Assembly: GCF_001194135.2 (NCBI RefSeq)
Contig: NC_068986.1
Location: forward strand, 70,609,288-70,673,287
Direction: 5' to 3'
Source: Octopus bimaculoides
Lineage: Eukaryota
Length of the DNA stretch: 64,000 nt
The position numbers and the translations under genes were made by a program. Position 1 is the stretch's first letter. Every line of letters begins with the position of its first letter. Below, in pieces: positions 4,836-56,838 of the stretch. The notes under the pieces are model-generated. The model did no database searches, was not told the origin of the DNA, and saw only the letters and a program-made list of their open reading frames with translations.

Positions 4836-5600
4836 TCAAATGATTTGTTTATTTCCAGGCTTCCATGCAAAAAAATTATGTTTAGTTATGGAGAATATTA
4901 CCTTGTTTGGAAAAGGGTGAAGGCTAATGGATGACAAGAATGCCATGTTGAATAGCCACGTTGAGTCGTTCCATTTGTTGAACATAAAGTTCTGTGTTGA
5001 CTGTTTGGTTCCATTCAAGCAATTCATAATGAATAATCCCTTCCTAGTCCCACCATACACACAACATTGTTTTACGCGAATGAAGATCTTGTTTCACGTG
5101 CTGTGTCGCTTGTTTACCAGGGCTAAGCCATTCCTTACGCTGCTTCATATTGATGTACAAGCACCATTTTTCGTTGCCAGTAACGATTCGGTAAAGAAAT
5201 TGTTGCTTGTGTCCATGAGTTGAGCAGTGATGAGCAAGCAAACCAGTGGAGATTGTGACTCGTTAATTTTTGTTGTTGTCACTTAAAGCATGCGGAACCC
5301 ATGCTCCATACTTCTGAACCTTTCCCATCGAGTGAAGATGCTTCTCTATAGCAGTGTGGGAGCATTCCATTTTCTCTGCCAATTCTCTTGTTATTTGACA
5401 AGAATTTTCGTGCAAAAGTTGGTTTAATCGCTCTTCATTGAACTCGACTGGACGGCCAGAATGAGGTGCATCTTTGGGGTCAAACTTTCCATTTGCATCC
5501 TCCTTCACAATTGCTGGCCTTGTGCCAAAATTTGAAATCAATATGAACTGTGAAAATGCATTTTGTTAAAATTCCATTGAGTTATCAAAGCAGTTTTTCT
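4836..5600 (-). mobile_element. Decayed mariner transposase
   Basis: ORF-track fragments DAPHSGRP...WVPHAL, IVTGNEKW and KTMLCVWWD in different frames; the 5' end is interrupted by a SINE 3' tail (CTGGCCTTGTGCCAAAATTTGAAATC). Confidence 0.9.
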
Positions 5601-6002: not shown

Positions 6003-6083
6003 TTCAAAATTGAATATGACATCTTTCCATCCGTTTTCACAGCTATCTTCCAGGATTTGAAAATAAAACCTCCAGACTATCAA
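6003..6083 (+). CDS. Divergent actin-related protein, internal coding exon A (upstream exons not found in window)
   Basis: tttcag|TTC...CAA|gtaaga; 81 nt, phase 0/0; encodes FKIEYDIFPSVFTAIFQDLKIKPPDYQ, which aligns with the actin region [22 protein letters not shown] and joins in frame to exon B. Confidence 0.85.
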
Positions 6084-6468: not shown

Positions 6469-7800
6469 CAGGGTGTGGAGTATTCATTTGCTTGATGACT
6501 GTCTCAGGAAAAACTAAAACAATGTTTTTATTTTTTTGTGATATATTCATCAAATTTGAGTCAGTTTGTCTTCATGACATGTTCTGTCAATCTCACTCAA
6601 TGAACCCACTTTTGATTTTGATGACAGCCCCCAGGCAACCTTAGAACTGGCTACAGGTTTTCGTCACTATCTCCCATTTTAGACCCTTGAAGGCCCTGAT
6701 AATCCTGGTCCTCGGCTTACCTCTCATGCTGCAACTAAATTTGTTGGTCTCTCATTCCACTGTGCCTCACACAAACAAGTTGCGTAGGTTGCAGTCAGGC
6801 AAGTTGGGAGGCCAAATGTCAGGTGCTGTATGATTGAAGAAATTATCCAACAACCAGGACTAGGTCTTCCAGCTGATGTGGCAGGGCACAGAGCTTTGCT
6901 GCCATATGTACAGCCTCGCTGCAGCTACCCAGTCAATCCAGAACTTCACTACCTCGCTCATATCACAGATGTAGCCATCAGTGTTCAGCCTGAGGCTCTC
7001 AGAGAAGAAGTGGGGTAGCATGGTGTCACCTTCACTACTGACAACACCAAAGTTCATGATTGTCACTGGAAATTCCATCTGCATGACTCTGAGCACGTCC
7101 TTGGGTGAGACAGAAAGCTACCTATTATTCTGTGAGTTGATCTTCTGGTGTTGGCTGAAATTCTTCTCATCAGAGAAGAACCACAGCATGTCTAGCTCCA
7201 GTGAGTGTTTCAACTTGATCAGCTTCTTGGTGTGCTTCAGTTGCTTTTCCTGCATTGCCTTGGAAAGAAATTGTCCCTTCTTCATCTTGTATGAAAAGTA
7301 GTGAATGTTCTCATGCACCACCTGCCTGATGAGCTTTTCATTCACACCTTCCTTCCAGGTGGTGGCATGCATCAGCTTGCTGAGATCATTGTTGATGACC
7401 TCCTGGATTTCAGTGACAAATTCCAGCATTCTGATAGCATTAGATCATCAATTATGAGCTTTCCTCTCTACTGTCACCTCGTAGTTGAATCCTGAATCTT
7501 CCGACTTCTTTCTGACCTCTTTCACCATCCTTCGATTGTTGTTGAGGAAGAGTGCAACGTTACATAATCGGGCTGTTATCTAATACTTTGTTGAACCCTT
7601 AGCATGAAACTGATTAGCTATAATAGATATGTAATTCTGTACACTTTGATTAATATATATACATATATATATATATTTCTCTCACAACTGAAACAGTGTT
7701 GCTGTTTCACACAGGCATCCAGAGAAGGTTCACCAACTGATTAGTATAAAGTTACTCACAAACACTCACAGCCTGGTTAATACAGGTTGATAACACATTT
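6469..7800 (-). mobile_element. Decayed maT (DD37D) Tc1/mariner element
   Basis: WFFSDEKNF...NSQNNR, FGVVSSEGDTMLPHFF, WQQSSVPCH...WPPNLPDCN; 37 residues between the 2nd and 3rd catalytic positions; left end TA|CAGGGTGT at 6467-6476. Right end not resolved. Confidence 0.85.
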
Positions 7801-8858: not shown

Positions 8859-8890
<32 letters not shown>

Positions 8891-9167
8891 GATGGGATTC
8901 TTTCAGTTTCCATCTACCTAATCTACTCACAAGGCTTTGATTGACCCGGGGCTATAGTAGAAGACACTTGCCCAAGTGCCATGCAGTAGGACTGAACCTG
9001 GAACCATGTTAGGAAGCAAACTTCTTAGCACACACCCACCACAATTTTTATAATTACAATATATTTTTAAAGAATATTTCATTATTTATATGAGTCCAAT
9101 TTGATTATTTTGTATCCATTTTTTTTTTCACAATAGTCTATAACATGTTTCTGTCTTTATTTTAAAG

Positions 9168-9360
9168 GTCATGCTGGTTATGCCTTTGAATATTAGTAAA
9201 AAAGATAAGGAAAATATTATGAAAATATTGATGAACCGGTTTCATGTACAAGGAGTGTGTATGGTAACCCAAGCTGTCACAGCTCTCTATTCCTACAAAT
9301 CCAAATCTGGTATAATGGTTGATATTGGTGAAAGACTGGAGGTTATTCCTATTTATGATG
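9168..9360 (+). CDS. Divergent actin-related protein, exon B
   Basis: tttaaag|GTC start; VMLVMPLNISKKDKENIMKILMNRFHVQGVCMVTQAVTALYSYKSKSGIMVDIGERLEVIPIYD aligns with actin VLLTEAPLN...[31 protein letters not shown]. The 3' boundary needs a GA donor (see findings). Confidence 0.9.
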
Positions 9361-9790
9361 GAAAGTAACATTTTTTTATTATACTATCCTTTTATTATTC
9401 ATATGTTAATTGTATGTTAAGTTGTATGTCTTTAACCCTTTAACATTTAAACTGGCTATATCCAACCAAAATAATCTATTTGTTTTATCTTCAAACTGGC
9501 CAGATCCAACCTCTCACACTTACCCTACAATATTATTCTAAAAATAAATAATCACATCATTGAAATCTCAAAGCTTCAAGGTAAAGCATGACTAATTCCA
9601 ATCAGTGTGAATAAATAAGTATTACATTTGATACAGAAATCTGAATGTGAAGGAGTTAGATATTTTACTCTGACAAAACAATATTCTATGAGGTTTGAAC
9701 CCTAACCCTTTTGATACCAACTTACCTGAGCCCACCCCTGGTTCTATTATACAAATTTCCTGTTTTAAAGTGTTCTAAATTAAAACCTTC

Positions 9791-10095
9791 CATCATCATC
9801 GTCGTTTAACGTCCGTTTTCCATGCTAGCATGGGTTGGACGATTTGACTGAGGACTGGTGAAACCGGATGGCTACACCAGGCTCCAATCTGATTTGGCAG
9901 AGTTTCTACAGCTGGATGCCCTTCCTAACGCCAACCACTCAGAGAATGTAGTGGGTGCTTTTACGTGTCACCTGCACGAAGGCCAGTCAGGCCAGTACTG
10001 GCAACGGCCACGCTCAAGATGGTGCATTTTATGTGCCACCTGCACAAGAGCCAGTCCAGAGGCACTGGCAACGATCGCGCTCGAAAATCCTAAAA
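9791..10095 (-). mobile_element. RTE-derived 3' end / SINE with (GAT)n tail
   Basis: Near-identical reverse complement of 61545-61835 and similar to 50760-51100; shorter copies near 3620-3870, 10537-10770, 13020-13250, 16250-16410, 32600-32830 and 34540-34900. Confidence 0.85.
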
Positions 10096-11541
10096 TTTCA
10101 TATTAATTTATGCTCCTAATTCCAGTTAAATAATGACAAAGTTGTTTTATTAACTTCATTATTTTCAAAATTAATTGAAACAAAAGCATTGTATATCATC
10201 AGATATATGATAATAAAAGGGTTAAGAGAGAGTTTTAAATGAGTGCAAGTAAAAAAAAAAGTGATTAGGGACCCAACTATAAAAGTTCAGTACATTTTTA
10301 GACATGAAGCAGCAATATTAGGATTGCTTTATCGACAAAAATGTAAAATCTCACTAATGGAAAGAGCTTTCATTACTCCTACAATATGTAGATTTACATA
10401 TGCTTGTATACTGAGTTGAAAAAAGTAACATTTTTAATGTTGAATTCTTCTGAGATTTCATAATGATAAAGTTTATATTGCAATGTCACACATCTTAATA
10501 GTTGTTTATTTAATAAGAAGAATTTTGAATTAATCCATCATCATCGTCCTCATTTAACATCTATTTTCCATGCTGGCATGGATTGAAAGGTTTGACAGGA
10601 ACTGGCAAGCGAGAAGACTGCACCAAGCTCTGTTGTCTGTTTTGGCATGGTTTCTACAGTTGGGTACCCCTCCAAATGCCAACTATTTTGCAGAGTGTAC
10701 TGAGCGCTTTTTGCATGACACCAGCACTGATGAGATTGCCAAATAACTTGAAAAACAAGACCCCCTTCACCTAGCAAGCTGAGAATGGCATTGAGGGAGG
10801 TGGATTTGTGTCAGATGATGAGAGGTGAGAGCATGAATAGGACAGAAATAGGAGGAGAAACATAGCTAGCTCAGCAGGAGCAAGAGAGGAAAGAGAGAAA
10901 GAGCAAAGATGGTGAAGATGGAGCAGGTGGTGACAGATGGAGTCCACTTAAGTTACAGGGTGGTGTACATAAATGAAATGGAAGCAAAAATTGAATAAGT
11001 TGAATGGGATGGATAAGTTCAGGAGATTGCAACGAAAGGAAATTGGGAGGCAGAGGGAAGGAAATGTAGTGTGAGTGGACACAAATAGAGAGAGAGGGGG
11101 GTGTTAAGAGGATATGTTGTAGGGGAGAGATCCAATTGTGTGCAAGTGGGTCTACAAGGGTGCAAAGGGAGAATGAGAGATAGAGGGGACAGGGAATACA
11201 GAGAGAGAGATGTACTTAGGTGGTTGGTTGGTTAGGGTGGAGAGAGGTTTGTCAGGGACAGGTTGTGTGTTGGAGCATGAACATGAGTGACATGCCTTTA
11301 TGGCCTCAATCCATAAAAAAGAATTTATAACAGCTTGAAATGTTGAATGAAGCATGACTTTCACAGTCTAATTTTTAAAGTTATTTTTAGATTGATGTGG
11401 GAAGGGAGGACAATTTTAAGCTGAAATTAACTGAACAGATGGAAATATTTTCAACTTTACTGAAAACATGTATCAACTAAATACAGCAATATATGTGAAT
11501 GTTTATGAGTGTATTTGTATACACTCATACAAAGAAATATG

Positions 11542-11545
<4 letters not shown>

Positions 11546-11596
<51 letters not shown>
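11546..11596. repeat. (TA)n microsatellite
   Basis: About 25 TA units; other (CA)n/(TG)n/(TA)n tracts near 337-372, 2270-2332, 14103-14145, 31080-31940 and 36420-36900. Confidence 0.95.
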
Positions 11597-11598
<2 letters not shown>

Positions 11599-11775
11599 GT
11601 CCAACCCATGGAAAGCGGACGTTAAACGATGATGATGATGATATATATATACATACATACATACATACACTGGGTGGCACCTTGGGCAAGAGTTTTCTAC
11701 TATAGCTTTGGGCCAACCAAAGTCTTGTAAGTGGATTTGGTAGATGGAAACTGAAAGAAGCATGCCATATATATA

Positions 11776-11994
11776 CACAAGGAAATGCTGAAAAGTTCCT
11801 GGCTTTGAGTAAAAGAAAATATAGAAGGATCAGATAGTTATGATTTTATTCAACATATTCCCCTCTAAGATTCATACACTTATTGCATTGGTCCTTCAGT
11901 TTTTCTAAGCCTTGTAAAAGAACTCGGAAGATTAGGCCTCTTACCAGGCTTTTCATGATACTCTTAAAGCCAGGAACTTTTCAGCACCCCCTCG
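11776..11994. mobile_element. Mariner-type MITE with about 30-bp TIRs and TA target duplication, nested in a SINE
   Basis: Left ...TGCTGAAAAGTTCCTGGCTTT; right AAAGCCAGGAACTTTTCAGCA...CCCTCG; TA at 11774-11775 and 11995-11996; SINE 11660-12260 continues on both sides. Confidence 0.85.
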
Positions 11995-12670
11995 TATAAA
12001 TGTGTGTGTGTAATATATATATATATATCAATGAGTGTGTCTTTGTGTCTGTATTTGTACCCCACCACTGCTTGACAACTGGTGTTGGTGTGTTTATGTT
12101 CCAGTAACTTAGTGGCTTGGTGAAAAAAACGATAGAATAAGTGCCATGCTTAACAAAATAAATAAGTCTTGAGGTCAATTCATTTGGTTAAAAAGTCATC
12201 AAGGTTGTGCCCCAGCATGGCCACAGTCTAATTACTAAAACAGATGAAAGATAAATGATAAAAGAATTCACACAGGGTAGTAAATTCCTGAGTAAGTCAT
12301 GAAATGAATCAATTGATTTAAAGTACATGTGTGAAACAGAAACCTGTCTGAGCTTAACATGACTGTGGCACTCATAAATATCTGTCTCAAAGACACTGGG
12401 ACAAAAGAATTGATCTTTATTTCTATATTTCATTTAATATAAGCTAGTATGTAAAATAGGGTTGGATCCAGATATAGTAAGACATGAGAAGGATGGTGAA
12501 GGAAGAAAGAGGTGGGGGAGTTGTTCAAAGGTGCAGGTTGAACAAGGGAAATTGAGAGTTAGGAGAAAGATACATCTGAAACCAGATACCATGAAAATTT
12601 CATGTCAGATTGGGGAATGATAAGTGGGTGTAGCTGTTGGCACTTGCTACTCCTTACTGTTTTTTTTTTT

Positions 12671-12694
12671 NNNNNNNNNNNNNNNNNNNNNNNN
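12671..12694. other. Assembly gap (24 N)
   Basis: Ns in the sequence. Confidence 1.
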
Positions 12695-14100
12695 GTCTCT
12701 TTAAAATAGAAATCTCCAGCTTTGTATTGTTTCTGATAAGAAAAATTAATTTTCAATTGCTGCTGCATAAAGTCAGTAACAATTGAAGAATTGTTGCTTA
12801 TTATAAACATGATCAGTTATTTTTAATTATCTAAAAAATCAATATAGCAATAAGTATAATCAACACAAAAAAGGTTATAAAAAAAATTAAATAATTTTAT
12901 CAGTTTTGTATTGTTGACTGTAATATTGTTTATTGTAATCATGTTTTTATAACTTTAACAATAATAATTTCACATATAGCACTCAAAACAAAACACATTT
13001 TTCAAACTAGGTAGTCATTGTTATCATCATTTAATGCCTGCTTTTTATGCTGGCATGGATTGGATAGCTTGACAGGAGCTGACAATCCAGAAGACTGCAC
13101 CATGTTCTACTGTCTGCTTTTACATGGTTTCTAGTGCTGGATGCACTTCTTAATGCCAACCACTTTGTAGAGTGTACAAAGGTGCTTTTTACATGGCACC
13201 AGCGCTAGTGAGATCACCAACTTATAAGACAAGATCCCTTCAACTAAATGGGGAATAGAATAAAGTGGGGTGCATTTGTGCTAGGTGATGAGAGGTTAGA
13301 GTATGATAGAGGGACAGAAACAGATGCCCTGCAGTGGAGAAGATTCTTTGCTACTCCAGTTGGAAAACCAAGAGGCGAAGATGTAAAACATATTTCAGCA
13401 TTCCAAACCCAGGTCCAAACTTCCTGATCAAAATAATTTATCACTTTCATAAGAATTGAATGAGCAAGCACTCCAGTCTACTCGGACATTCTGTAGGGCA
13501 AGCAGAATAGCTTAGTGATAGTACATTACCTCTATCTGACTGGTAGGACTTAGACAAACGTCTGCCAGTCCAACAATGAGTATCAAGGATTATTTCATAC
13601 AGTCATAACAGTGGACTATAAAAGAGGTTAGGGATTTGTTTTGACCAAGCTTTATTTGTTATTACAGTTGCCACTACAACTGTTACATACCTCACTCTTG
13701 CAGAAGCAGATGCAAGCACTCTCATTTTTCACTGAGGAAACCCAAACCCAGGTGCCTTCTTAATATTGATATCTTTCCAGTTTCTCTTACTCAGAAAATT
13801 TCCCTGCTAACAAAATGAAACAGTCTTAAATCATCATTATCATTTTCATATTCACTTTCCATGCTTGTGTAGGACATACAGAATTTTTTGAGGTAGATTT
13901 TCTGCAACCAGATATCTTTCCTGTCACCATCAACCCTCTATTTCTAATATTTCTCCATGGCTGGACATGTTTTCACAGGAGATTGGCAATGAAGAACAAA
14001 CTTTTATGATAGTGACACTTGTTTACAATAATCACATATATGTTAAGACAAAGAGACACCTACTCACACACATCTACAATCACCCATATATGTGCATATA

Positions 14101-14147
<47 letters not shown>

Positions 14148-14793
14148 GTTCAAAACAGTATGATTCAGAATCTGATTCAAACTGTTTTGGACAATACATG
14201 TAACTCCCAATAAATGTGTAGAGTGCCCTTCCTTTTGTTTGTCCACTCACTCATATATATATAACTCTTCGAAACACTAGTGTTGAATGGTGGCAGCTGA
14301 TGAAGGAAATGTTCTCTATGTGGCCTGTGTGTTTTCTGTACTTGTTTATCATTTTGTCTACGTTTTGTTTGCAATCCTGTACCCAGATATGCATCTATAT
14401 ATACAGGTAGATGTAAGTATGTACATACATGTACGTATATATGCATATACTCATTTATTATTTGTATTATATATATATATATATGCATGCACACACACAA
14501 TGGGCTTCTTTCAGTTTTCATCTACCAAATCCATTCATAAGGGCTATAGAAGACAAAGCAATTTTTAAAATACCTGATGATGCATTTCCCACTCCCTAAA
14601 TTCAAATTTATCTTTTCAATCAAATTTAGCCTCTTTTAAGATGTAAGCTTCAAAATATGATTTGCTGTTTTCTTGCTGCTCAAAATCTACAAATTTTCTT
14701 TCACTGTTAGTATACAATACCCCTTAATGAGTATAATGTGCTGTATAATTTATTTCTGTTCTGACATTTATTTCCATCTCTTTTCACCTACAG

Positions 14794-14936
14794 GATTTGC
14801 AATTGAAGGGGGACAATCAGTTCAGTCATATGGTGCTGGCAAAATTCGGCAGTCATTGAGATCTGGATTGGCAAAACACAATTTTCCTTTGTACTCACCA
14901 TTGGAGCAAATTCTTGTTCGATATGTTATGGAGCAG
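14794..14936 (+). CDS. Divergent actin-related protein, exon C
   Basis: cctacag|GA TTT (phase 1) to GAG CAG|gtaatt; (G)FAIEGGQSVQSYGAGKIRQSLRSGLAKHNFPLYSPLEQILVRYVMEQ, corresponding to actin GYALPH...EIVRDIKE. Confidence 0.9.
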
Positions 14937-17007: not shown

Positions 17008-17123
17008 ACGTGCTATGTATCCAAAAATTATGAAGAAGAGATACAGAAATATATGCAGCAGCCAGAGAAGTTCTTGTCATCAGTATATTTAAACAAATAT
17101 AATATACCAAAAGACACCTATAG
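17008..17123 (+). CDS. Divergent actin-related protein, exon D
   Basis: ttttcag|ACG to TAT AG|gtattg; TCYVSKNYEEEIQKYMQQPEKFLSSVYLNKYNIPKDTY, corresponding to actin LCYVALDFEQEM. Confidence 0.88.
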
Positions 17124-17928: not shown

Positions 17929-18075
17929 CACCATAAGCCATGATATTAGCTGCTTTGCAAGTCCTGAAGGTTTCTTTAATACAGACCTGTGGGGTATGGA
18001 CTATCCCACAGTTCAAGCCCTGGTATTAAAAGCAATTAATGCATGTCCAGTGGATAACAGGAGGCATATGTGCAG
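17929..18075 (+). CDS. Divergent actin-related protein, exon E
   Basis: cttacag|C to TGC AG|gttggt; (S)TISHDISCFASPEGFFNTDLWGMDYPTVQALVLKAINACPVDNRRHMC, corresponding to actin TIGNERFRCPEALF...CDVDIRKDLY. Confidence 0.9.
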
Positions 18076-19623: not shown

Positions 19624-19723
19624 AGCTATCTACCTAAGTGGAGGTGTAACAATGATCCCTGGATTTGCAGCAAGATTGGAGAAGGAAGTTCAAAAACTAG
19701 TCAATCCATCTCTTCTTGTGCAG
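19624..19723 (+). CDS. Divergent actin-related protein, exon F
   Basis: cttaacag|A to GTG CAG|gtaaga; (R)AIYLSGGVTMIPGFAARLEKEVQKLVNPSLLVQ contains the actin adenosine motif (LSGGTTMYPGIADR). Confidence 0.93.
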
Positions 19724-23492: not shown

Positions 23493-23636
23493 GTTCATTC
23501 GTCTCCCCAAAGATACCATGCAGCCTATATTGGAGCTTGCATTCTAAGTGCACTACCAGAGTTCCAAAACCACTGTATTTTAGCAAATGAATGGAAAAGA
23601 GAGGGTACAAGAGCCTTTCAAAAATGGATTTATTAA
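23493..23636 (+). CDS. Divergent actin-related protein, terminal exon G
   Basis: ccttatag|GTT to TAT TAA; VHSSPQRYHAAYIGACILSALPEFQNHCILANEWKREGTRAFQKWIY*, corresponding to actin [35 protein letters not shown]. Exons A-G total 924 nt, one open frame. Confidence 0.92.
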   Translation, partial: VHSSPQRYHAAYIGACILSALPEFQNHCILANEWKREGTRAFQKWIY

Positions 23637-24583: not shown

Positions 24584-24998
24584 TCAGCTTTGTGAAACAC
24601 TTCTGCTTCTTGACTGCCGTGTAAACTTGTCCCTAGATCTACTGCGTGACCGACTAGATGAATGAGAATGATCTGGTTTCACTGCAACAGTTTCTTGTTC
24701 TCCATTTGTTTTTCCTTTGGAAGCACTTCGGGATCTACTTCTGGAACGGCTAACAGATCTACTTCTTGATTGACTAACAGATCGAGAACGGCTCTTTGAT
24801 CGCGATCTACTTTTGTCTCGTCGATAGTGATCTGGACTAAGTTTGTCTCGACCTCGTCGATGTTCACTGCTTGGACTACGTCGTCTTCTGTCTCTACTAC
24901 TACTCCTGTGGTCTCTACTACGACTGCGATCTCTACTATGAGACCTTGTTCGAGATCTTCTGCGACGCCTGTCTCTGGATCGTGACCTTGATCGAGAT
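24584..24998 (-). CDS. SRSF7-like: SR splicing factor, terminal RS-domain exon
   Basis: Minus-strand acceptor tttgtag|A TCT CGA (phase 2); long RS dipeptide tract ending SRSVSQS*; stop at 24584 as in the ORF track. Confidence 0.93.
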
Positions 24999-25093
24999 CT
25001 ACAAATTGAAAAAAAACAATATAGACATATTACACACAACATACATCAAATTTATTCTGAAACAGTGAAAAAAAAAAAAAAACTGATAAGTAC

Positions 25094-48189: not shown

Positions 48190-51100
48190 TATAGCCTGAA
48201 GGACTATAATGAATAAGAGATGCAAATGATCTTATGGTTTCTAATACTAACTTCAGAAAACCTGCCAGCTACCTATTCACCTACCAATCTGGTGGACACA
48301 CTTGTCAAATTGATTACATCCTCAACAGGAAAAGGGAAAGATGGCTACTTATAAATGCCAAAACCTTCCCAGGTGAAGAATGCACCCCACAACATAGATT
48401 AGTAGTTAGCGACTTCAGGATCAGGGCTAAATGGATGACCAGAAGACGGCCAGCATGGGGAAGAAGGGTCTGGAAGCTTAAGGATCCTGCGAATGGACAG
48501 AGATTTAGAGATGTATTACTCGAAGCTTTTGACAAAATAGAGGGGGATATAACATGATGTGGAAGACAACTGGAGGTTTCTATGGGACAACCTGTTGCAG
48601 GCTACTGACCAGATGTGTAGATGGTGCAAAGTCCCCTCTTGACCCAAGGTAACATGGTGGTGGAACAATGTAGTTGATAGGGCCATTAGGGAAAAGAAAT
48701 AGGCATGGAAGGACTGGAAGAACGGCAGAAGCAGGGAATTGCATCAGATTGCCAGAAGGGAAGCTAGGAGACAGGTTTACTTAGTCAGAGGGAAAGCAGA
48801 TAAGAAAAAATTTGCCAATGTTCTGCGTCATGAGGACCAAAGACTTGAAGTGTTTTGTGTTGCAAGACAATGTGTGAGAGAGAATCGTGATATCACAGAA
48901 AAGAAATGTGTCCACATGGATGATGGCTCACTTGCATTTAATGAGGCTGCAAGGAGACTTGGAGATGCCACAATGAAAGGTTGCTAAATGAAGAGAATGA
49001 ATGGGAGAGAGTCTGCTGAATGTTGACCCAACAGAGGGACCAGCTATCCGAATTGACAGTACCTTGGTAGATAAAGCAATTAAGGGTATGAAGACAGGAA
49101 AAGCCCCCGGCCCATCAGAAATCACCGCAGAAATGCTTAAAATATCTGGCGGTGTTGATTATAGTCTAGTCACCCGTATAGTCAATAAGGTGATACATGG
49201 AGGAGTCATACCCAATGACTGGTGTAGCAGCACCATAATCAACTGCTACAAAGGTAAAGGTGATGCATTAGATACAAATAATTACAGAGGTATCAATTTG
49301 TTAGATCAGGTAATGAAAGTCACAGAGAGGGTCACAGCCCAATTAATTAGGGAGAGAGTCAGTCTAGACGAGATGCAGTTTGGGTTTGTGCCAGGGAAAA
49401 ACACCACTAATGCTATATTTCTGGTAAGACAGCTGCAGGAGAAACCTCTGTGCCTGGCTTTCGTTGACATGGAAAAAGCCTATGACAGGGTCCCCCAATC
49501 CCTTATCTGATGGTCAATGCAGAAACTAGGGATAGATGAGTGGTTAGTGAGAGCTGTACAAGCTATGTACAGGGACACTGTCAGTAAGGTAAGGGTTGGC
49601 AATGAGTACAGTGAAGAATTCCGGGTAGGGGTCCACCAAAGATCAGTCTTCAGCCCCTTCTTATTCATCATAGTCCTCCAGAGAAATTGAAGACAGCATG
49701 CCTCTGGGAGCTTCTCTATGCTGATGACTTTGCTCTAATAGCTGAGTCACTATCAGAACTAGAGAAGTTTCAGATGTGGAAGCAAGGTCTAGAATTGAAG
49801 GGCTTTAGAGTCAATCTAGCAAAAACCAAAGTCTTAGTAAGTAGGAAGGTAGACAAACCACAAATCCCTTCAGGTCGATGGTCCTGCTTGATCTGTAGAA
49901 AAGGTGTAGATAGAAACTCCACAAAATGCACCCAGTGTAAGCTATGGACAACATAAGAGGTGCAGCAATATCAAAGGAGGGTTAATGCTCAGGAGCAGTA
50001 AACACTGAAAATGTGCAGAAAACAACTTCCGTCATATTCCAGGGGGAAAAACTACAAGTAGTTGATAGCTTCCATTACCTAGGTGACCAAGTCAGGAGCG
50101 GGGGTGGTTGCTCTGAGAGTGTAGCTGCTAGAATAAGAATAGCCTGGGCAAAGTTCTGAGAGCTCCTACTTCTGCTGGTGACAAAGGGCCTCTCGCTCAG
50201 AGTAAAAGGTAGACTGTATGATGCATGTGTGTGAACATGCCATGCTATATGGCAGTGAAACATGGGCCATGACTGCTAAGGACATGCGTAAGCTTGCAAG
50301 GAATGAAGCTAGTATGCTCTGCTGGATGTGTAATGTCAGTGTGTATACACAACAGAGTGTAAGCGCCCTGAGAGAAAAGTTGGACATAAGAAGGATCAGA
50401 TGTAGTGTGCAAGAGAGATGACTGTGCTGGTATGGTCATGTGTTGCATACGGATGAGGACAGCTGTTGAAAAAGTGTGAAACCCTAGCAGTAGAGGGAAC
50501 CTGTGGAAAAGGTAGACCAAGGAAGACTTGGGATGAGGTGTTGAGGCATGACCTTCGAACATTGGGCCTCACCAAGGTGATGACAAGTGACCGAGACCTT
50601 TGGAGGTATGCTATGCTTGAGAAGACCCGGCAAGCCAAGTGAGACCATAACCGTGACCTATGCCAGTGTAGCATAACCAGCCCATTTAAGAGTATTCTTC
50701 AATCATTGAGCAATAAACTGCACTTGCGAAGACCGATTGAGGCAAGGAAAGTCGTTGTCGTGGCCAATGACAGTACCGCCTGATTGGCATGTAAAAAGCA
50801 CCATTCAAGCGTGGTCATTGCCAGTGCCGCCTGACTGGCTCCAGTGCTGGTGACACATAAAAAGCACCATTCAAGCGTGGCCAGTACCAGTACCGTCTGA
50901 CTGGCCTTTGTGCTGGTGGCAGTAAAAAGCACCCACTACACTCTCAGAGTGGTTGGCATTAGAAAGAGCATTCAGCTGTAGAAACTCTGCCAGATCAGAT
51001 TGGAGCCTAGTGCAGCCTTCTGGCTTGCCAGCCCTCAGCCAAACCATCCAACTTATGCCAGCATGGAAAGCAGATGTTAAACGATGATAATGATGATGAG
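48190..51100 (+). mobile_element. 5'-truncated RTE-clade LINE (endonuclease end, RT, 3' UTR, (GAT)n tail)
   Basis: QIDYIL...QHRLVVSDF; DEMQFGFVPGK...AFVDMEKAYDRVP; LLYADDFAL; frameshifts and stops; roughly 60-bp tandem units at 50760-50940; tail near 51080-51097. Confidence 0.95.
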
Positions 51101-51129
51101 ATTGAGGACTGAGCCTTGATGGACTCCAA

Positions 51130-52910
51130 CTATCATCATCATTTAATGTCCATTTTTGCTAAATTCACTGAAATCCTTGTTGACTCACTTTACTTACTGC
51201 ATCTTGGTTTATGGCTTGTTCAACTCTTACAAGCCATTTGTCAATGCTTAGTTTCCTTAGTGACCACCAAATTACCATACATGGTATCCTGTCAAAGGCC
51301 TTCTCCAAGTCAGGAGTAATGGTTTATTCTTAGCTTGGTGTTTCTCCTGCATCATCTGGACATGAAGCAAAATTGTATTGCAACTCCCTCCATACCCTTC
51401 ATAACCTGATCCAGTCATTAGATTCTTCGATAGCTGCTTCTCTCTAAGGCATCTCCTTTGCCTTTGCAGCAGTTTACAATGATACTGCTATGCCAGTCAT
51501 TAGGTATGACTCTTTCTTGTATAACTTGATTAACTAACTGGGTGATAATCATGTCACTCTACCTCACCAGATATTTTGAGCATCTCCACAACCATCCCGG
51601 ATGGACCTGCGACTATCCTTCTAATACATCCTTGATGGTTTTATTTACCTCACTGCTGTGAACTTGAATTGCTGGTTGTTCTGCAGAGTCAGCAAGTGGT
51701 AGCCCTACTTTATCCCTATACATTCTCCACATTCAGTGGCCTCCCATAATAGCACTTCCATGTCACTCATTTTTTTCTTCTACATCCATGGCAAGTATGC
51801 CTTTATCCTTCTAAATAAACTTCCTCTCAATGACATCTTAAATCTCTATCATAAACTGTCTTGTAATCCTGACATGTGCGAACTTCCTCTTTGCCTCACC
51901 CATAGCCAAGTATACCTATCACCTAGCAACCCTTCTAGTGATTTGATAATGCTGACACCTTCCTTTCAGGCTTTCCAAGTCTGTCACATAGCCTTTACTG
52001 CCCTATCAACTGCATTATTTCACCACCATATTACTTTCAGATCCGCTGAGACTTTGCCCCAGTCACATGTCTGATTTGTAGCCCTAGGCATGCTATTTTG
52101 CAGAAGTTCCTGGTTTCCATCTATGCTACAAGGTCTTCTTTTCTATTGCCAAAATCTGTTCCCATTTACAAGACCTTTTAGTTTCCATATCTTCCTTCCC
52201 TATGTCACATTTTGTTTCTGTGTCAACCTAGCTCTGATTCTGAAGTCACTAGCCACTAATCTATGTTGTATGGTGCTTTCTTTGCCAAGAAAGGCTTTAT
52301 ATTTACAGTAACTCCTCTGTCCATTTTCTTGGTGAGAATGTAATTTATCTGATTTGTGTGTACGCCAGATTGATAGGTGATGGGGTGGTTAGCCAGTTTC
52401 CTAGTGGTGTGTGTTGCAAATTGTTAGATCAGTCGCATCACAGAACTTCAGGAGCTGTACACCCTCCTCATTTCTTGCACCATAGCCATAACCTCCATGT
52501 ATGTCATGGAAATCATTATCATATTGGCCAACATGACTACCGAAGTTGTCAGTCACAATGAAGTAACTGTCAACCAGCATTGAATTAGTCTACAAAAGGG
52601 TTTCATAGAAGCAGCCCATCTGTTCTTCTGTGCATCTTTCCTGTGAGGCATATGCAGAGATAACCATCACTTTTGAGTTGCCTTTAATTTGTCTCTTAAT
52701 TATCCTATTGCATACCCTGGCTACCTGAAATACATTTTTTTATCCTTTTCTCAGCTAACAGTATGCCTACTCTACCCCTGCTGTCGCTATTATCCACAAG
52801 AATTTATATTGCTGTTTTGTGCTTGTGAGGAGTTTGGTAAAGGATCAGTTCCACCTTACTTCTTGTACACATCACATATCCATTCATCTCTACTCTAGCA
52901 TTTTCACAAT
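51130..52910 (-). mobile_element. Decayed RTE LINE 5' half (endonuclease to RT start)
   Basis: Minus-strand remnants QEVRW, VMVISAYASQ, HGGYGYGARNEEG and WWSLRKLSIDKWLVR. Confidence 0.8.
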
Positions 52911-53932: not shown

Positions 53933-54743
53933 CTGAAAAATAAATTTAGAAGTTTTAAATATTTGATAATTTTTGCTTTAATATTTTTATTTTAGTTATA
54001 TTTTAAGAAAAAATTGTTAGTAATAAAAATATTGAATCACAAAAAATTAAATTACATTATTACACTATCCATGAATATATTTTATATTAAAATCATAAAA
54101 TCATTAAAGCTTTTACTCCACCTGAAACAAAACAAATTCAATGTGAATAAACACTAAAATAAAGTTGCTTTAATTTCAATTCATAGAAGCCACTGAAAAG
54201 TAAATATTACACAAATGTAACAATAAACATCACTGAACGAAAGAGTGGCTCAAAATATGGATATATCTTGCCTGTCTCTCTACGACAGGTTCCTCTTCCC
54301 AGCAGCTAAGACGCTTCGCTTCACCACAGCAATATATTTAATTAATGAGCTCGACTTAATTGAACCACAAATCTTTTAAAAATTACAAAATCTTGCAATT
54401 TTACTTACACAAGCTTTTAAAATCTCATAGAAAAAAAAGAATACAAGTTATTCTTCCCAATCTGAAATAATTTTGAAATCTTAGTATCCAAAAGAACTTT
54501 TAGTCATCAGAGACTACCATTAACCATTTACTATTCAGGTTACTGCTAAATGTAATACTTATTTATTCACATTGTTTTGAAGTAATCATACTTTGAGATT
54601 TCAATGATGTGACTGTTTTATTTTTACAATGACATTGTAGAGTAGGTGTGAGGAGTCAGATCTGGCAAGTAAAAACATAAAACAGGTACAATATTTGGGC
54701 TGACAGAATCATCATCACCTGCTGATGGCTATTATCTATGACA

Positions 54744-56089: not shown

Positions 56090-56838
56090 AATATTCAGCA
56101 CAATGAATTTGGCATGACAAAGGTTTCTGCTCAGTGAGTGCCATGTCTTCCGACACCTGATCAAAAGCACACCAGGCTGATCACATCACAGGAAGACCTG
56201 ACATTGTTTCAGGCAGATCCAGCTGGTTTCCTTGAATGTTTCTTAACACACAGGATAATTGTTGATTATCTTTGAACCAGAGACAAAGAGACAATCCATG
56301 CAATGGAAACATTCCCTCCTCACCTGTTCCAAAGAAGGCCAATATTGTTTCATCTGCAGGGAAGGTTGATGGGCCTCAATTTTTTGGGATGCAAGCGGCA
56401 TTGTATTTACTGATTACCTTCAGTAAACATTGATAGTGTAGAAGGGCTACAATGGGGAGTACTATACCAACTTGCTGAGACAGTTACAAAAGGAAATCAA
56501 AACCAACTGCCCAGGAAAACTGACAAAAGGTGTCTTGTTTCATCAGAACAATGCTCTAGCACACAAGCCCTTCGTTTCAATAGCAGTTGTGTGAGACTGA
56601 CTTTGAACTGGTTGGTCACCCTCCTGATGTGGCCTCATCTGACTATCATTTGTTCCCCAACGTGAAAAAACACTTGGCTTGGAACCAACAGGATGAAAGC
56701 TTCTTCACCAATGGAATCCAAGCAAAACTGATAGAAGTATGTGGACTGCAAGAGAGACTACATTGAAAAGTAAACCTCATTTAGTCACATTCCATGAGAG
56801 TATTTTGATCAAGCTATGAACTTTTTAGCCAACCCTCA
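56090..56838 (+). mobile_element. Decayed mariner, irritans-like
   Basis: TKVSAQ*VP, EPETKRQSMQWKH, FWDASGIVFTDYL, KGVLFHQNNALAH, SDYHLFPNVKKHL; right end ...AACCCTCA|TA. Confidence 0.88.

Follow-up and report, generated by a model that had tools for sequence, protein, structure and literature searches.

The intron that separates the second and third of seven in-window exons of Octopus bimaculoides gene LOC106882864 (window: 64,000 nt of genomic DNA) is most probably a functional, fixed U2-type intron bounded by GA and AG. Introns of the GA-AG kind, a known class that departs very rarely from the GT-AG rule, have few well-documented conserved animal cases, and the present intron is a new example of that class, its junction being annotated implicitly in RefSeq and not described in the literature searched, where no paper was found naming LOC106882864 or its products. 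The initial annotation of this DNA had offered three explanations of the unusual dinucleotide: a genuine GA donor, an allele that disrupts splicing, or one wrongly assembled base. It was the first of these that was supported by the state of the donor in other cephalopods and by selection on the exons downstream.

The gene model was built from open reading frames, tblastn with beta-actin and inspection of splice sites. It consists of seven exons on the + strand, totalling 924 nt including the TAA stop codon: exon A (6003–6083, 81 nt, FKIEYDIFPSVFTAIFQDLKIKPPDYQ, donor CAA/GTAAGA), which is the first exon of LOC106882864 within the window; exon B (9168–9360, 193 nt, encoding VMLVMPLNISKK...GERLEVIPIYD(G)); exon C (14794–14936, 143 nt, (G)FAIEGGQSV...RYVMEQ); exon D (17008–17123, 116 nt, TCYVSKNYEEE...KDTY); exon E (17929–18075, 147 nt); exon F (19624–19723, 100 nt, AIYLSGGVTMIPGF...); and exon G, the last coding exon (23493–23636, coding part 144 nt, TAA at 23634–23636). 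GT is present at each of the five remaining donors and AG at every one of the six acceptors. The proposal that the seven exons form one frame was confirmed, the 306-aa window model being 100% identical to the C-terminus of the RefSeq O. bimaculoides protein XP_052824809.1. These are the last exons of the gene, with earlier ones lying upstream of the window, and the complete LOC106882864 protein (2,468–2,487 aa) combines a PH domain with a C-terminal actin-like domain in a sequence mostly of low complexity, the full-length RefSeq protein carrying both PF00022 and PF00169. The spliced window product matched Pfam Actin (PF00022) with E = 5.1e-41 over profile positions 98–406 of 410, and its alignment with solved actins spans approximately residues 103–367 and includes the PIYEG and LSGGTTM motifs. 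Of the actin-like domain, the window exons supply the last three quarters, up to its C-terminal end. The earlier description of the product as an actin-like protein was thus correct as to the domain, but the 924 nt do not make up a complete protein, only the C-terminal part of one of about 2,470 aa, and the octopus domain is only about 30% identical to actin.

At the junction itself, positions 9355–9370 were read directly as ATGATG/GAAAGTAAC (9357–9369: GATGGAAAGTAAC). Exon B ends in phase 1 with GAT G (position 9360), followed by GA at 9361–9362 and then AAGT, and exon C starts at 14794 (cag/GA TTT GCA, preceded by cacctacag), in agreement with the phase and exon ends first assigned. The non-canonical 5' splice site G/GAAAGTAA (9361–9368, + strand) carries A for T at +2 (9362), and the donor ATG/GAAAGTAA fits the consensus at -1, +1 and +3 to +7, which bears out the original reading of its first six bases, GAAAGT, as GTAAGT altered at +2. 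Joining 9360 to 14794 restores PIYD-G-FAIEGG and the single open frame of seven exons, and among the joins considered it was the only one to keep that frame open. The claimed colinearity with actin held across the junction, which aligned without gaps to conventional actin (PIYDGFAI versus PIYEGFSL in the alignment with solved actins).

The resulting intron (9361–14793, + strand) is 5,433 nt long and has repeat insertions; its counterpart in O. vulgaris measures 2,281 nt. Its 3' end (14750–14793, + strand) is of U2 type, a pyrimidine tract and a branch-like ctgac accompanying the acceptor cacctacag/, so that GA at +1/+2, AG at the 3' end, and a U2-like remainder of the donor and 3' region, genomic features of the U2-type GA-AG class, are present. 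A U12-type intron was rejected, as the donor is GAAAGTAAC and not /RTATCCTT, and the branch motif TCCTTAAC is absent from 14740–14793. As the dinucleotide GA occurs both at the start of the intron (9361–9362) and at the start of exon C (14794–14795), the mRNA alone cannot separate a GA-AG placement from AA-GG or AA-GA, and aligners may put the mRNA junction at differing coordinates within this 2-nt ambiguity. GA-AG is, however, the sole placement that combines an AG acceptor with a consensus-like donor. An in-frame TAA at 9366–9368 makes in-frame donors downstream of 9360 impossible. A hidden exon within the 5.4-kb intron that might restore the frame from the GT at 9365 was also considered, and was rejected because actin, Argonauta, a bivalve transcript and RefSeq all join exon B directly to exon C without an extra residue.

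The history of the donor was followed by reading the homologous DNA in three cephalopods (O. bimaculoides, O. vulgaris and Argonauta hians) and one bivalve. O. vulgaris (OX597819.1) shows the identical TATTTATGATGGAAAGTAACA at the donor, and its exon B ends TATTTATGATG/GAAAGTAACA, letter for letter as in the window. In Argonauta hians, the homologous donor is tat gat g/gtaagtaaag and the acceptor ttcag/GATTTGC, giving a GT intron of unchanged position and phase whose first eight bases match those of Octopus except at +2. The pteriomorph bivalve ortholog likewise has a GT donor (GAC G/GTGAGT) at the same position and phase with the same flanking codons (TAT GAT/GAC G/G...), and its transcript-derived protein reads PIYDGFVIEGG. 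That Argonauta and the bivalve share a GT donor in this place and phase indicates an old intron position at which GT is ancestral. On this comparison, the change of T to A at +2 is placed within the Octopus lineage, after the split from Argonauta and before that between O. bimaculoides and O. vulgaris. Comparison of the orthologous donor, suggested by the initial annotation as a check, therefore favoured a real GA donor.

Further support was obtained from the exons downstream of the GA. Exon by exon, lengths agree among the three cephalopods for all seven; indels and stops are absent and the 924-nt frame is intact, so the earlier impression that the other exons are undamaged was upheld. Between O. 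bimaculoides and O. vulgaris, both of which carry GA, exons C–G differ at 11 synonymous and 5 non-synonymous sites (dS 0.086, dN 0.0099, omega 0.115), and neutrality was rejected (binomial P = 5e-5). A pseudogene or decaying fragment was rejected on the same grounds, with no frameshifts or stops and a dN/dS (omega 0.11–0.14 in this test) far from the expectation of near 1. Purifying selection together with an intact frame in GA-bearing species indicates that exons C–G are still translated in frame; as they were so translated while GA existed, a simple splice-killing lesion is excluded, and the splice-disrupting allele considered at the outset is very unlikely from these data. The clear change from GT to GA, combined with continued purifying selection, makes the locus a natural experiment on a usable donor with A at +2.

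The sequence PIYDGFAIEGG, as produced by the 9360/14794 junction, was found in nine of nine RefSeq sequences examined (O. bimaculoides X1–X3 and six covering O. sinensis X1–X7), these protein models being computational. Use of this junction in RNA is suggested by the RefSeq models, homology and selection taken together, and, as it occurs in all RefSeq isoforms examined, the GA site appears to be constitutive. Protein searches returned no octopus transcript-derived proteins spanning the junction; the word index also missed a 100%-identical RefSeq match, and absence from these searches is consequently weak evidence. Exact look-up of the sense open reading frame (MLVMPL...PIYDGK) and of the antisense one across 9362 matched no record, and exons B and C alone, when used as a homology query, matched one bivalve exon.

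When a donor is mutated from GT to GA, splicing can usually pass its first step but is held up at the second. Because A at +2 normally has this effect, efficient use of the GA donor is not a given. In the mechanism proposed here, the ancestral donor would have been a strong ATG/GTAAGTAA, in which T changed to A at +2 while the rest of the donor stayed intact. U1 would pair in the ancestral register (-1, +1 and +3 to +7) despite the +2 mismatch, U6 would read +4 to +6 (AGT) and thereby set cleavage at G/GA, and the normal AG acceptor would then be used to yield the in-frame PIYDG-FAIEGG mRNA. The GA site has seven register pairs with U1 and a computed duplex energy of -6.0 kcal/mol, which falls inside the range of the five other donors of the gene (-4.5 to -11.0 kcal/mol).

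Efficiently spliced GA-AG introns are found in human FGFR genes and ITPR1 (PMC4176328, PMC7072748), where they are conserved (PMC4176328, PMC2374985), those of FGFR1-3 having been described by Brackenridge et al. 2003 as cited in PMC4176328, PMC7072748 and PMC2374985. The octopus intron resembles them in having GA at +1/+2, an otherwise consensus-like donor, a normal AG acceptor and evolutionary conservation, and also in that tools restricted to canonical sites tend to move the junction to a nearby GT, as happened when the ITPR1 junction was misannotated (PMC4176328). It differs from the FGFR introns in that their GA is an alternative donor needing a canonical GT 6 nt upstream, whereas the octopus site is without such a GT and looks constitutive from the RefSeq models. 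Thousands of GA-AG introns occur in Eurytemora affinis and also in Oikopleura dioica, with a variant U1 put forward for Eurytemora (PMC7072748). The octopus donor, like those of both species, is an animal U2-type GA donor with A at +3, but the conserved AG that precedes GA in Eurytemora and Oikopleura is replaced in octopus by TG (TG/GAA). The supplement of PMC7072748 contained no octopus data, and a 2026 review made no mention of GA-AG.

These precedents raise the question of whether the GA is recognized by a special route, either a variant U1 that pairs with A at +2 or a reliance on a neighbouring GT and intronic enhancers. Such a route is unlikely, though it draws on the variant-U1 hypothesis and on the dependence of FGFR splicing on a nearby GT and intronic elements (PMC7072748, PMC4176328), and a GT does lie 4 nt downstream of the GA site. 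It is also consistent with the unusual conservation of the first part of the intron (9361–9660, + strand), in which 5 of 289 bases (1.7%) differ from O. vulgaris, compared with a mean divergence of 7.3% over 14 intron flanks (P = 2e-5, uncorrected for the 14 windows). However, the GT 6 nt upstream that characterizes the FGFR arrangement is missing, the bases before GA are TG and not the AG of Eurytemora and Oikopleura, and the conserved stretch is in part an old repeat (9463–9646, with a 74% copy at 54533–54702 on the minus strand), while the RNA fold of 9300–9700 is unremarkable (z = -0.8). An Rfam scan of the window gave no matches and hence no snRNA gene, and A-to-I editing was rejected as a means of turning GA into GU, since inosine at +2 would be read as G and not U. 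By analogy with FGFR, the conserved stretch of about 300 nt could contribute an intronic element on which use of GA depends, or could reflect an unrelated local constraint. A more specific and rather doubtful version would have the GA accommodated by this stretch acting as a lineage-specific splicing enhancer, which would have originated, or become constrained, once T had changed to A, with the choice between GA and the downstream GT serving as a switch between full-length and truncated forms. Were this so, the locus would present a natural, datable case of compensatory evolution rescuing a donor whose second step would be expected to stall, and the truncated form would be without most of the actin-like domain.

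Alternatively, the GA might be dead and the gene rescued by a canonical donor nearby. No GT occurs within 9344–9360, the nearest being at 9342–9343 (out of frame), 9328–9329 (in frame) and 9365–9366 (downstream). Use of the in-frame site TTG/GTGAAA (9328–9329, + strand), 33 nt upstream of the GA, would end exon B at 9327 and produce a protein without ERLEVIPIYDG. This site is both canonical and in frame, with a U1 duplex of -5.4 kcal/mol, and it was the donor chosen for O. bimaculoides in 2015 in the model A0A0L8FJY8, a 268-aa "Actin, cytoplasmic" that lacks the 11 residues and runs from ...MVDIG straight to FAIEGG, the rest of the gene being placed by the 2015 set in separate N-terminal pieces. 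The purifying selection on exons C–G is equally expected if this GT is the donor used. The 11 residues, however, align with the core strand of actin that contains VPIYEG and show conservation throughout the family, Argonauta and bivalves included, and no RefSeq isoform of O. bimaculoides or O. sinensis uses the site. The choice made in the 2015 model carries less weight in that its pipeline appears to have been restricted to canonical sites. Moreover, the 33 nt between the 9328 GT and the GA are identical in O. bimaculoides and O. vulgaris, compared with about 2.4 changes expected were they intronic, although this is a weak indication (P of about 0.09). Rescue through the GT at 9328 was accordingly judged quite improbable.

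Still less probable is that the T-to-A change disrupts splicing and that the nearest canonical GT, AAA/GTAACA (9365–9366, + strand; the +5/+6 of the ancestral GTAAGT), is used instead, with the downstream exons decaying or with a regulated truncating isoform as the outcome. Translation confirmed, as first noted, that this join shifts the frame (GGA AAG ATT TGC AAT TGA) and meets a stop at 14804–14806, ending the protein as ...PIYDGKICN*. That very form exists in the O. vulgaris annotation, where CAI9723723.1 ends in this manner and the remainder is a separate gene, CAI9723722.1, whose start, MEQTCYV, falls within exon C. Against it stand the intact and selectively constrained exons C–G of two species described above and the poor quality of the site, which lacks G at both -1 and +5 and has the weakest U1 pairing of the sites compared (-3.2 kcal/mol). 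To our knowledge, PASA and EVM accept canonical splice sites only. Both were used for the O. vulgaris annotation (PMC10700109), and the split model is therefore an expected artefact. Pipelines of this type mis-model LOC106882864, and the site has already produced split or truncated gene models in two annotations.

An error of assembly at a single base, or an allele private to the sequenced O. bimaculoides individual, would need just one T/A substitution, and the v1 and v2 assemblies of this species are not independent of each other, but either is practically negligible and excluded by the same GA in the independent O. vulgaris assembly, made from another species and individual with another sequencing technology (ONT polished with 10x Illumina reads; PMC10700109), and by the avoidance of the site in canonical-only annotations of two species, which indicates that neither assembly offered a GT there.

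The protein family to which the gene belongs was also surveyed. A HMMER scan identified an O. sinensis protein of 2,473 aa (98% identical) and one from Argonauta hians (81% identical), and proteins that combine a PH domain with an actin-like C-terminal domain were found in molluscs (bivalves and gastropods), annelids, arthropods (a firefly, scorpions and decapods) and the choanoflagellate Salpingoeca. Every member is entered as uncharacterised or hypothetical, or bears a generic name ('actin', 'actin-like', 'Actin-related protein 8' or 'PH domain-containing protein'), and this architecture is a widespread family without a name. At the second phosphate-binding loop, where actin has DSGDGVT, the octopus counterpart is DIGERLE (window 9327–9347), and DIGERLE or DIGERME was present at this loop in every cephalopod and bivalve member seen. 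Given this replacement, nucleotide binding by the actin-like domain may be altered or lost.

Mobile-element remnants are dense in the introns and flanks (8880–9050; 5047–5565 and 6727–7444, both on the minus strand; 49000–52600; and 56100–56800) and include octopus SINE copies, mariner/Tc1-like transposase fragments and reverse-transcriptase fragments. One octopus SINE copy ends 120 nt before exon B, and an apparent actin match (HHNFYN, 9037–9054) was rejected as a chance match inside an octopus SINE. Two short runs of N, near 370–390 and 12670–12700, mark assembly gaps. Approximately 1 kb beyond the stop codon of LOC106882864, a convergent open reading frame on the minus strand (24584–25042) has a long Arg/Ser-rich tail (SRSRSRSRDRRRR...) and resembles the final exon of a gene for an SR-type splicing factor; a minus-strand gene of 240–272 aa occupies the corresponding place in O. 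vulgaris, O. sinensis and Argonauta.
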